DNA of 64,000 nt, from assembly GCA_044892505.1 (NCBI GenBank), contig CM097884.1:66154001-66218000 (forward strand), given 5' to 3'. The DNA is from Schmidtea nova (Eukaryota). This document shows, in pieces, positions 24,960-25,427 of this stretch. A program made the position numbers and the translations under genes. Numbering within the stretch: the stretch's first letter is position 1; each line of letters begins with the position of its first letter. The notes under the pieces are model-generated. The model was not told the origin of the DNA, ran no database searches, and was given only the letters and a program-made list of their open reading frames with translations.

Positions 24960-25427
24960 TCATGAGTCACATGTTAGTATGAAATCAACAAAGGCTTTAT
25001 CTTCTATAATTGATTTTATATCGTTAATAATATTATCAACTATATTAGCATAGTCTTTATTTTTTAATCCTAATATGACTACTTTACCACTAGCAAAAAT
25101 ATTGACACACATTGGATTATATTTTGTATATCTTAAAGCTGGAAATAATTCTGGTTCATAAACACATGGAATCAATTTAGATAACTCATTTAAATTACAA
25201 ATAAATCCTAAATCTGCAGTCACAGTTATCGATTGTATTGTTAAATCGTGAGACTTTACTTTTTCATCACTAATAAATTCCTTGCATCCCATTATTCTAT
25301 ATCTGCCTGTCTTAAAGTATATTATTGGGTATTTTCCACTTCTATCGACAATTTGCTGTGGTTTCCCAGTTGGAAATATCATGTGCGACACATCTGTCTT
25401 ACCCTTGTAATTAATGTTTCTAATCAT
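24960..25427 (-). CDS. TATA-binding-protein (TBP)-like protein, 155 aa
   Basis: IQSITVTADLGF..L..L...VYEPELFPALRY...P..VNIFASGKVVILG matches TBP repeat 2 (recalled YEPELFPGLIY...IFVSGKVVLTG). RNIN and IIYFKTGRYRIMG match a shortened repeat 1. Confidence 0.88.
   Translation of the reverse strand: MIRNINYKGKTDVSHMIFPTGKPQQIVDRSGKYPIIYFKTGRYRIMGCKEFISDEKVKSHDLTIQSITVTADLGFICNLNELSKLIPCVYEPELFPALRYTKYNPMCVNIFASGKVVILGLKNKDYANIVDNIINDIKSIIEDKAFVDFILTCDS

Follow-up and report, generated by a model that had tools for sequence, protein, structure and literature searches.

The window, by which we mean the whole 64,000-nt stretch of Schmidtea nova DNA that was analysed, contains a young Polinton that encodes a small homologue of the TATA-binding protein (TBP), hereafter mini-TBP (Table 1). 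Polintons are characterized by long terminal inverted repeats (TIRs), 5'-AG...CT-3' ends and a 6-bp target-site duplication. The TIRs of this element are near-identical and at least 1,070 nt long, both ends begin with AG, and the sequence AATTAC is present on both flanks; the TIR length is a lower bound, because the inner edge of the right TIR abuts a run of N. The TIRs also hold arrays resembling host-factor sites. The structural model of the major capsid protein matched the capsid proteins of iridovirus, PBCV-1, mavirus and Sputnik in a Foldseek search (E 7e-16). PDB sequence searches with orf406 and orf347 returned no match, and a penton protein was not identified in the search with orf347. 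The integrase frame is split by a frameshift in the window but continuous in relatives, whose ORF spans 341-343 aa, and the protease candidate is shorter than the neighbouring 157-159-aa ORF of relatives, possibly through one in-frame stop.

Table 1. Positions of features in the window, in order along the forward strand.
Feature	Position	Strand	Remarks
Older Polinton remnant	18100-21469	.	Inverted orientation, internally deleted
Mini-TBP pseudogene	18806-19171	+	In the older remnant; 5' part missing, first ~99 nt not alignable
Whole young Polinton	21470-39542	.	18,073 bp; 6-bp duplication AATTAC at 21464-21469 and 39543-39548
Left TIR	21470-22539	+	Starts 5'-AG
Left-arm accessory genes orf205, orf197, orf179	22589-24755	-	Same strand as mini-TBP; no family match; without ATAAACAA box
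Mini-TBP gene	24960-25427	-	Intact, 155 codons, ATG start; residues 1-56, reduced helix-less repeat 1; residues 57-~145, complete repeat 2
Divergent intergenic region, mini-TBP/ATPase	25428-25516	.	89 bp, AT-rich; holds the first ATAAACAA box
ATAAACAA box	25482-25489	+	35 nt before ATPase ATG
Packaging ATPase (A32/FtsK-like)	25517-26140	+	207 aa; Pox_A32 PF04665, 28.8 bits (cut-off 22.8)
ATAAACAA box	26127-26134	+	34 nt before orf178 ATG
orf178	26161-26697	+	Basic N-terminus, hydrophobic C-terminus; function unknown
ATAAACAA box	26694-26701	+	59 nt before integrase ATG
Integrase	26753-27797	+	rve PF00665, 35.9 bits, and chromodomain; one frameshift gives two ORFs
ATAAACAA box	27724-27731	+	43 nt before orf347 ATG
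orf347	27767-28810	+	Virion-module gene, unknown fold; no more than a penton candidate
orf126	28803-29183	+	Small virion-module ORF; ATAAACAA box 28703-28710 lies 100 nt upstream
ATAAACAA box	29139-29146	+	41 nt before major capsid protein ATG
Major capsid protein (orf406), double jelly-roll	29180-30400	+	406 aa; predicted structure, pLDDT 90.5
Adenain-like cysteine protease candidate	30482-30919	+	His and Gln-Cys motifs only; no Pfam match
ATAAACAA box	30916-30923	+	36 nt before orf133 ATG
orf133	30952-31353	+	Unknown function
DNA polymerase B (PolB), protein-primed type	33457-37518	+	ORF opens at 33457, first in-frame ATG at 33526; appears intact
Right TIR	38474-39542	-	100% complementary to left TIR save one 1-nt length difference; inner edge abuts N run

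The PolB ORF itself had no polymerase match in Pfam (PF03175 was missed), NCBIfam or PHROGs, and none in a PDB sequence search. Its identity therefore rests on homologues at 41-60% identity, which bear PF03175 and PF02945 and one of which is named as a DNA-directed DNA polymerase; more distant named relatives, at about 30% identity, are arthropod proteins. The combination of PolB, an rve integrase, long TIRs, a 6-bp target-site duplication, an A32-like ATPase and a double jelly-roll capsid protein identifies the element as a Polinton. An earlier first-pass annotation had called it one, and this held on the PF03175-bearing PolB homologues, the rve and chromodomain integrase, the TIRs and the duplication. 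Family searches found no RNA polymerase gene among the ORFs of the element, and a TBP encoded by it would therefore need the polymerase of the host. Rfam and tRNA scans across the window found nothing.

In mini-TBP, residues 62-134 matched the Pfam TBP family (PF00352) with an E-value of 6e-15 and 55.3 bits, relative to a cut-off of 22.9. This was the only PF00352 stretch detected by Pfam, so that mini-TBP fails a criterion of two tandem complete repeats. NCBIfam TBP models matched at E 8.5e-15, yet far under their full-length cut-offs, and a PDB sequence search returned archaeal and eukaryotic TBPs, the best being 2z8u (E 4.7e-19). The ranking of this single-sequence search raised the question of an archaeal origin, which was not upheld: a profile of the protein family scored archaeal and eukaryotic TBPs alike, at 76 to 62 bits. 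The C-terminal half of mini-TBP always scored higher against repeat 2 than against repeat 1 of solved TBPs, and this constant preference suggests that mini-TBP descended from a two-repeat TBP.

In the AlphaFold2 model (pLDDT 94.5, pTM 0.83), residues 2-48 form four strands without any helix, and a full S1-H1-S2-S3-S4-S5-H2 repeat comes next. In Foldseek, this model matched two-repeat TBPs with probability 1.0, E 3e-9 and TMq 0.58-0.70 over 164-178 columns; the matches comprised 44 TBP chains, included TBPs from TATA-box and pre-initiation complexes, and showed that the saddle fold superposes on solved TBPs across both repeats. Weak matches to rolling-circle replication initiators occupied ranks 45-50, below the TBPs, with E-values of at least 0.01 and a TM of about 0.4. 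Profile comparison of the two family halves with hhalign placed residues 37-50 onto residues 110-123, over only 14 columns and with a probability of 31%. The N-half (residues 1-55) aligned to cellular TBPs across a whole repeat, but weakly (probability 10-15%); this result may point to the N-half being a relative of a whole repeat, and is no proof of it. Taken together, these results show that the ORF is a real and intact gene whose product is a reduced TBP homologue, and chance is excluded. The first-pass annotation, made without database searches, had described an intact 155-aa ORF with TBP repeat 2 and a shortened repeat 1, placed head-to-head with a packaging ATPase across an 89-bp AT-rich gap, and had named Pfam PF00352 and structure prediction as checks of the TBP fold. 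The checks were run and were positive. The ORF was exact, the gap was confirmed with its neighbour assigned as an ATPase through PF04665, and the shortened repeat 1 held by the AlphaFold2 model and Foldseek; no Pfam or PDB match was found at the sequence level in residues 1-56.

It is established background which of the TBP phenylalanines kink DNA, and the same annotation had judged that three of these four positions look retained. In the alignments, F95 and F111 fall on the pair of conserved repeat-2 phenylalanines of solved TBPs and F38 on the S4 phenylalanine, and each is Phe in 64/64 family members, consistent with this judgement; F18 is Phe in 57/64 members and its placement as the fourth position is unreliable. 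The acidic stirrup E91-P92-E93-L94 aligns with the repeat-2 E-P-E-(L/Q) of solved TBPs, and its four residues are kept in 62, 63, 64 and 59 of the 64 members, respectively. In cellular TBP, the repeat-2 stirrup residues contact TFIIB or Brf, as seen in the TBP-TFIIB-DNA structures 1vol, 1c9b and 1ais, all three of which were among the PDB matches of mini-TBP. The minor-groove Asn of repeat-2 strand S1' of TBP is replaced by Ser in 63/64 members. Given this replacement and the unassigned fourth phenylalanine, DNA binding by mini-TBP could be weak or unlike that of TBP; no binding data are available. F38, E93, F95, R99, N109, F111 and G114 are invariant in the 64 sequences, and N4, N6, Y7, F38, R44, M46 and G47 of the N-half are nearly or fully invariant. 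Mean pairwise identity within the family is 46% for the N-half versus 52% for the C-half.

A second copy of the gene lies in the older Polinton remnant, which contains a C-terminal piece of PolB, pseudogenes of TBP, orf179 and orf197, and TIR-like 120-nt repeats. The terminal repeats of this remnant enclose the young element, and further such repeats are located at 39600-39800; a second virion module was sought in the window and none was found. The copy is 84% identical to the intact gene at the nucleotide level over codons 34-155 and carries three frame-shifting indels and three premature stops. The two window copies differ by 23 synonymous versus 22 non-synonymous codon changes. We discarded the dN/dS between them as a test of selection, one copy being a pseudogene. 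The first-pass annotation had reported a diverged paralogue at 18803-19168 and had taken it as the sign of a lineage trait. The former claim held in part: the copy is real, but it has decayed to a pseudogene, and the older element that holds it is internally deleted. The latter held far more strongly through the protein family, with at least ~100 clusters and four contig groups, than through the dead window copy.

This family consists of ~150-residue proteins; at 50% identity they fall into no fewer than about 100 clusters. A profile search recovered 57 clusters at E<=1e-30 plus many further full-length single-stretch matches, and 94 related clusters are of similar length (median 151 aa). The sequences are merely 40-60% identical and have invariant residues in both halves. 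Gene tables for four groups of related contigs showed that family members adjoin an A32-type ATPase in contigs that also bear rve and PolB_2, and the sizes of the same contigs recur across the TBP, PolB and capsid match tables. The mini-TBP gene is co-directional with the ATPase, not divergent from it, in two of these groups, and Bcl-2 and RING finger genes lie next to the TBP gene in related contigs. A search for intermediates with two repeats, run on relatives that were longer or matched in two stretches, found no clear case. Most had one Pfam repeat and, like mini-TBP, did not show two tandem complete repeats; the remainder were ordinary TBPs with two to four Pfam repeats, plus one weak two-stretch match (P0285). 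Because its relatives adjoin the ATPase in related PolB/integrase contigs, mini-TBP is a conserved accessory gene, under constraint, of one lineage of invertebrate-type Polintons (adintovirus-like elements).

The exact 8-mer ATAAACAA occurs nine times in the element, always on the + strand and never on the - strand, and six of these boxes each precede an ORF of at least 132 codons, at 34-59 nt from its ATG (Table 1). In null simulations (2 x 5000), an 8-mer common to 6/12 upstream windows was reached 0/10,000 times. The virion module holds eight boxes, where 0.67 are expected. The window-wide exact count is unremarkable (19 vs 14 expected), and a scan allowing one mismatch is uninformative in such AT-rich sequence (306 matches vs 272 expected). 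The signal resides in strand and position. Several boxes fall on or close to the end of the gene before them, with distances to the upstream stop of 0 to about 100 nt, and a role as a 3'-end signal is conceivable for these. The box at 25482-25489 cannot be such a signal, since no + strand gene lies upstream of it. If the boxes located 34-43 nt before an ATG act as -30 elements, the leaders would be ~5-15 nt, which is unusual for Pol II genes. ATAAACAA may also fit the core site of host forkhead-family factors. The link between the box and mini-TBP is purely positional: it is drawn from this one element only, and there are no binding, expression or transcription-start data.

We propose that mini-TBP serves as a private TBP for late genes, bringing host TFIIB and Pol II to the ATAAACAA boxes, a reading that we consider as likely to be wrong as right, since the DNA target, the partners and the timing are all inferred. 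According to this proposal, mini-TBP would be made from the accessory arm adjoining the TIR. Its binding site would be the TATA-like 8-bp box that precedes the ATPase, the integrase, the capsid gene and their neighbours, at roughly 35-45 nt from the start codons. Mini-TBP would bend the box DNA, and its intact C-terminal stirrup would bring in host TFIIB and RNA polymerase II; the outcome would be a private late-promoter code for the virion module. Lacking the repeat-1 helices, mini-TBP may offer no surfaces to the host regulators that restrain cellular TBP. That Pol II may be redirected to the element's own late promoters was already suggested in the first-pass annotation; it is still an inference, with circumstantial support from the shared box. 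A bolder version, which we consider less likely than not, treats mini-TBP as a one-protein "viral pre-initiation" device, in which the remodelled repeat 1 would read the non-canonical 3' half of ATAAACAA and repeat 2 would recruit host TFIIB/Pol II, giving a code insulated from the regulators of host TBP. If this version were true, mini-TBP would be the first true TBP homologue serving a mid-size nuclear virus-like element without its own polymerase.

The alternative that survives best, though an improbable one, is that mini-TBP is a general substitute for, or competitor of, TBP, which would use ordinary TATA-like DNA or host TFIIB without any private target, ATAAACAA being unrelated to it. 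It might boost all promoters of the element while evading the regulators of TBP, or it might titrate TFIIB as a dominant-negative mimic and damp host transcription. The stirrup and the repeat-2 phenylalanine pair would suit such a role equally. In addition, both repeat-1 helices are gone, surfaces of this kind being ones that bind regulators of cellular TBP, and the gene lies among host-interaction genes (Bcl-2, RING finger) in relatives. However, the reduced N-half is strongly conserved (mean identity 46%), which speaks for a dedicated interface rather than a decoy, and a decoy leaves the strand-specific ATAAACAA box before virion genes unexplained.

A less probable alternative is that ATAAACAA is a signal for host machinery, either the site of a host factor, e.g. 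of the forkhead family, or a 3'-end signal, and that mini-TBP acts at other promoters, for example in the accessory arm, or together with Pol III. Several boxes do sit on the stop codon of the gene before them or just ahead of it, and the TIRs carry arrays of apparent host-factor sites, host factors therefore mattering to the element. On the other hand, the ATPase box has no + strand gene upstream, and the distances to the downstream ATG are tight (34-59 nt), whereas those to the upstream stop are spread (0 to about 100 nt). An invariant 8-bp core at a fixed core-promoter distance also suits a TBP-sized footprint.

It is very unlikely that mini-TBP is a non-transcriptional, architectural bender of DNA at the termini or origin, acting in protein-primed replication, integration or packaging. 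TBP-like folds are known in proteins with other roles, the Foldseek search gave weak replication-initiator matches, and the gene adjoins the packaging ATPase. Nevertheless, mini-TBP is a homologue of TBP at the sequence level and more than a fold relative, it keeps residues that serve TFIIB contact in TBP and that have no obvious use in replication or packaging, and the replication-initiator matches reached only E >=0.01 and a TM of about 0.4. Finally, the dead second copy and the missing half of repeat 1 could be cited in favour of a remnant without function, left from the capture of a host TBP gene, but this reading is practically ruled out by the intact ORF, by its full length relative to a large family of the same reduced architecture (median 151 aa), by the invariant residues in both halves at 40-60% identity, and by the conserved position of the gene in related elements.

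Returning to the private late-gene reading, the timing and control of genes in Polintons and adintovirus-like elements are essentially unknown, though these are among the most widespread DNA virus-like elements in animals and protists. The presence of the ATAAACAA box before packaging and capsid genes yields a putative promoter-factor pair that can be tested directly. Mini-TBP is also a natural experiment on which parts of the TBP saddle can be removed with the fold kept, and possibly with TFIIB recruitment kept too.

Compared with cellular TBP (PF00352), mini-TBP has sequence homology across a full repeat and the saddle fold over both, and keeps the repeat-2 phenylalanine pair and the acidic stirrup. 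It differs in its size (about 150 aa vs a core of about 180), in having nine strands and two helices, where TBP is known to have ten and four, in the Ser that replaces the S1' Asn, in its single Pfam repeat, and in being encoded by a mobile virus-like element. The animal TBP-related factors TRF2/TLF/TBPL1 are diverged TBP paralogues serving a subset of promoters; both of their repeats are complete, and the phenylalanines that contact TATA are lost. Mini-TBP, in contrast, keeps at least three of the phenylalanine positions and has lost half a repeat, and no TRF2/TLF/TBPL1 protein was returned as a named match to it.

A precedent is a "TBP" gene labelled in the MELD viruses with adintovirus-like PolB by Starrett et al. 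2021 (PMC8502044, Fig. 5 legend), which is likewise TBP-like and carried by a virus-like element of middle size with PolB and integrase. It differs in that it is a figure label only, from non-animal datasets, with no architecture, conservation or promoter described. In the searchable full-text literature, no description of a Polinton or adintovirus TBP was found beyond this legend. The idea of the first-pass annotation, which knew of no TBP among the canonical Polinton genes, is thus not entirely without precedent: a TBP label in related non-animal elements was already known, and the shared ATAAACAA box before capsid and packaging genes is new here. The same paper lists Bcl2 and IAP homologues as adintovirus genes (PMC8502044). 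With regard to the criteria for Adintoviridae, the present element has arthropod PolB relatives at about 30% identity, and Bcl-2 and RING genes occur in related contigs; the window element itself yielded no Bcl-2 gene.

Two kinds of viral TBP-like protein were known before, namely the TBP homologues of giant viruses, which have their own RNA polymerase, and the TBP mimics of herpesviruses. The former (Nucleocytoviricota, e.g. Heterosigma akashiwo virus, mimivirids, marseillevirids and asfarvirus B263R-like proteins) are virus-encoded proteins with the TBP fold, and they ranked first in the search of the viral structure library, with E-values from 4e-8 to 1e-3. The listed matches are at least 186 aa long and only 8-23% identical to mini-TBP. 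Giant viruses with TBP-like proteins are known to carry their own RNA polymerase, whereas the Polinton described here is an element without one. For the proposed mechanism, the closest analogy is provided by the late-gene TBP mimics of herpesviruses (KSHV ORF24, EBV BcRF1 and HCMV UL87), TBP-like factors with which a nuclear DNA virus without a polymerase reads a non-canonical, TATA-like box in its late promoters and engages the Pol II of the host (PMC7498053, PMC12529657, PMC4893493). The likeness is one of functional analogy only: no sequence match between mini-TBP and the herpesvirus vTBP family was found in Pfam or PDB, BcRF1 was a marginal Foldseek match (E 1.2e-2, TMq 0.35), and membership of mini-TBP in the BcRF1/ORF24/UL87 family was rejected. 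The herpesvirus mimics are large, reproduce the fold without sequence homology, operate as part of a viral complex of six proteins and bind directly to Pol II, whereas mini-TBP is a true 155-aa TBP homologue with a TFIIB-type stirrup. A truncated true homologue of TBP, spread across a large lineage of 15-20-kb elements that depend on the host polymerase, would represent a new solution to the same problem.

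The gene for mini-TBP, a reduced homologue of the TATA-binding protein (TBP), lies in a Polinton that we term the young element. The first-pass annotation had given the place and size of this gene and its head-to-head arrangement with the packaging ATPase, and these claims held exactly; 89 bp separate the two start codons, which are on opposite strands. Pfam PF00352 (TBP) matched residues 62-134 of mini-TBP with 55.3 bits (gathering score, 22.9), and a PDB sequence search returned 35 TBP entries and no other noteworthy match, the top one being Methanocaldococcus TBP 2z8u (E 4.7e-19). 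In all PDB matches, the C-half was closer to repeat 2 of TBP than to repeat 1. Archaeal and eukaryotic TBPs gave similar scores with the mini-TBP family profile (76 to 62 bits), and therefore an archaeal or a eukaryotic source could not be decided. Taken as a single claim, it is very probable that mini-TBP is a TBP homologue and is conserved across the lineage.

Residues 1-56 (the N-half) did not match any profile. That this half is a reduced first TBP repeat was shown by three lines of evidence: an AlphaFold2 model, Foldseek and hhalign. The model, built from 64 family sequences (mean pLDDT 94.5, pTM 0.83), has strands at 2-10, 25-28, 35-38 and 42-48 and no helices in the N-half, followed by a canonical repeat consisting of strand 63-72, helix 79-83, strands 88-90, 97-100, 107-111 and 115-121, and helix 127-153. 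Foldseek aligned the model with complete two-repeat TBPs over 164-178 columns (probability 1.0, TMq 0.58-0.70), including TBPs from TATA-box, TFIIB and pre-initiation complexes. By hhalign, residues 37-50 were placed onto 110-123, with F38 corresponding to F111 and G47 to G120. Under relaxed settings, residues 1-55 spanned the whole cellular TBP repeat at a low probability (10-15%), and the gaps of this alignment fell at the sites of helix 1 and part of the stirrup.

Conservation in the family extends to both halves, with a mean pairwise identity of 52% for the C-half and 46% for the N-half. F38, F95 and F111 were invariant in 64/64 sequences, thereby supporting the earlier claim that three of the four Phe are retained. 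Position 18 is Phe in 57 of the 64 sequences and may be the fourth, although its placement is not established. E91-P92-E93-L94, which aligns with the repeat 2 stirrup, is nearly invariant; in TBP this stirrup contacts TFIIB. In strand S1', Ser66 stands in place of a conserved Asn (63/64 sequences).

A word-indexed search found 94 clusters related to mini-TBP, about 80 of which were 100-235 aa long with E<=1e-15 and PF00352 in all; none of the clusters came from NCBI or UniProt. An exhaustive profile search gave 57 clusters (50% identity) at E<=1e-30 and many further single-stretch, full-length matches to proteins of 140-200 aa. The names of ten clusters checked were automatic JGI labels only. 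Gene tables of eleven metagenome contigs, for which only the gene annotation was used and the contig DNA was not compared, described near-complete relatives of the young element. In four contig groups the mini-TBP gene adjoined an A32-type ATPase, with rve and PolB_2 also present; two groups had the two genes divergent, the arrangement of the window, and in the other two groups both genes ran in the same direction. Contigs sized 16321, 22064, 20066, 16200, 12033, 10087 and 5485 were shared by the TBP match table and the PolB and/or capsid match tables. Two of the four groups carry a Bcl-2 gene directly between the ATPase and TBP genes, and one of these has a RING-finger gene (zf-C3HC4_3) nearby; the young element in the window showed no Bcl-2 match. 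Named homologues of the element's PolB are moth, wasp and mite proteins (~30% identity), and homologues carry PF03175 and PF02945. Because of the Bcl-2 and RING genes and these arthropod relatives, the related contigs are likely to be animal-tropic adintovirus-like genomes.

Features of the young Polinton and of the other insertions around it (window positions)
Feature	Position	Strand	Remarks
Young Polinton	21470-39542		18,073 bp; holds mini-TBP gene
Minus-strand genes		-	orf205, orf197, orf179, mini-TBP
Plus-strand order		+	ATPase, orf178, integrase, orf347, orf126, capsid, protease candidate, orf133, 43-nt array, PolB
mini-TBP gene	24960-25427	-	ORF, 155 codons, ATG start
Packaging ATPase, A32-type	start codon 25517	+	PF04665
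Integrase	26753-27797	+	rve + chromodomain; one frameshift breaks frame
Major capsid protein, double jelly-roll		+	406 aa; model pLDDT 90.5
Adenain-like protease candidate	30482-30919	+	short; one in-frame stop possible
Older Polinton remnant	~18100-21469	inverted	contains second mini-TBP copy
Second mini-TBP copy, pseudogene	18806-19171	+	84% identical to codons 34-155 of young gene
Third PolB, degraded	51900-55400	-	~45% aa identity to young PolB; 10 separate tblastn pieces

The terminal inverted repeats (TIRs) of the young element extend over at least 1,070 nt and are 100% complementary except for one 1-nt length difference, indicating that the insertion was recent. Both ends read 5'-AG and an AATTAC hexamer is duplicated on either flank; such ends and a duplicated flanking hexamer are hallmarks of Polinton integration. 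The capsid model matched iridovirus, PBCV-1, mavirus and Sputnik capsid proteins by Foldseek (E 7e-16). The integrase frame is broken, and that of the protease candidate may be, despite the identical TIRs and perfect target duplication, whereas all other genes are open; very recent disabling of this copy and assembly errors are both possible and could not be distinguished. The true start of PolB is uncertain, because homologues span only 81-94% of the ORF, whose N-terminal region (33700-33880) contains about five repeats of a short peptide motif. Runs of N occur at 20691-20940, 37856-38016, 38021-38473 and 60467-60726. Two of them fall within the element, in the stretch that separates PolB from the right TIR, and therefore hide the inner end of that TIR and anything encoded there; ORFs called across them were rejected as artefacts.

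Several repeats were observed inside the element. Both TIRs (21527-21702 and 39318-39493) contain dense arrays of ~14 units per arm with a period of 11-23 nt, in which TGACTCA and TGACGTCA palindromes alternate; we take these to be AP-1-type and CRE-type core sites. The arrays might be a host-factor enhancer adjoining the accessory arm, the minus-strand genes that include mini-TBP. The inner TIR parts (22368-22550 and 38474-38656) consist of three 61-nt units in tandem, of which two are identical, and every unit has a G+C-rich inverted repeat; the copy in the right TIR borders an N run. A 43-nt tandem repeat (32553-33337, ~18 copies, one irregular 70-nt step) takes up the greater part of the long non-coding interval that separates orf133 from PolB.

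The diverged second copy that had been noted in an older element is present, but is a decayed pseudogene with three premature stops and three frame-shifting indels, and without an alignable 5' end. One large internal deletion took the virion module (ATPase, integrase, capsid and neighbouring genes) out of the remnant, in which nothing is left but a fragment of the PolB C-terminus, pseudogene copies of TBP, orf179 and orf197, and 120-nt repeats resembling TIRs. The young element inserted into the remnant's terminal repeats, which resume at 39600-39800. Remains of Polinton insertions have piled up in this region; a small orf179-like piece was also seen at ~57600-57700. An ORF with a Tc5-transposase HTH (PF03221, E 9e-12; 9414-9878, minus strand) looks like a pogo/Tc5-type DNA transposon remnant. 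Near-perfect long palindromes lie at 60797-60995 (96-nt arms, 100%, 7-nt spacer), beside an N run, and at 11624-11826 (101-nt arms, 95%, 1-nt spacer).

A TATA-like 8-mer, ATAAACAA (the box), occurs within 120 nt upstream of 7 of the 12 ORFs, all on the plus strand. All nine exact copies in the young element lie on the plus strand, the minus strand having none, and no copy was found upstream of the four minus-strand genes, including that for mini-TBP. Six copies precede start codons, those of the ATPase (35 nt), orf178 (34), integrase (59), orf347 (43), capsid (41) and orf133 (36); the ninth (33841) is inside the repeated-peptide region of the PolB ORF. When the maximum over all 8-mers was taken in 5,000 Markov resamplings and 5,000 random-stretch draws of the element, sharing of one 8-mer by 6/12 upstream windows was never reached in either set (maximum, 5). 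In the virion module, eight copies were observed against 0.67 expected from base composition. The box has the size of a TBP footprint (8 bp). Five of the nine copies are preceded by T, so that the first six bases form a classical TATA box; the difference from the classical box is in the 3' part. This part of a TATA box is contacted by repeat 1 of TBP, and repeat 1 is the one remodelled in mini-TBP.

The best-supported reading, kept from the first-pass annotation as inference only, is that mini-TBP is a private TBP for late genes; without expression or binding data, it could as well be wrong as right. Mini-TBP would be made from the accessory arm, would bind the box and would recruit host TFIIB and Pol II via the stirrup, whose conservation is shown and whose contact is inferred; lacking the repeat 1 helices, it may evade host TBP regulators. 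The weakness of this reading is that the box positions imply very short leaders, that the box may also resemble the core site of forkhead-family factors and that conservation of the box in relatives is not established. One rival is that mini-TBP acts as a general TBP substitute or decoy. Another is that the box is read by host factors or is a 3'-end signal. Mini-TBP could also be an architectural protein in replication or packaging. A dead captured fragment is contradicted by the family conservation.

In the searchable literature, a link between TBP and Polinton-type elements was confined to a 'TBP' label in a figure legend of Starrett et al. 2021, for elements of non-animal datasets, and descriptions of the mini-TBP family, of its architecture and of a cognate promoter were not found; we therefore count mini-TBP as a new form of the known virus-encoded TBPs. 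Virus-encoded TBP homologues as such are already known, and what that literature does not describe is a TBP reduced in this way and encoded by a mid-size element without an RNA polymerase of its own. The closest viral relatives in fold are the TBP-like proteins of giant viruses, all of which are at least 186 aa long and at most 23% identical to mini-TBP. The closest functional analogue is the late-gene TBP mimic of herpesviruses (PMC7498053, PMC12529657, PMC4893493), which resembles mini-TBP in fold only and is unrelated in sequence.
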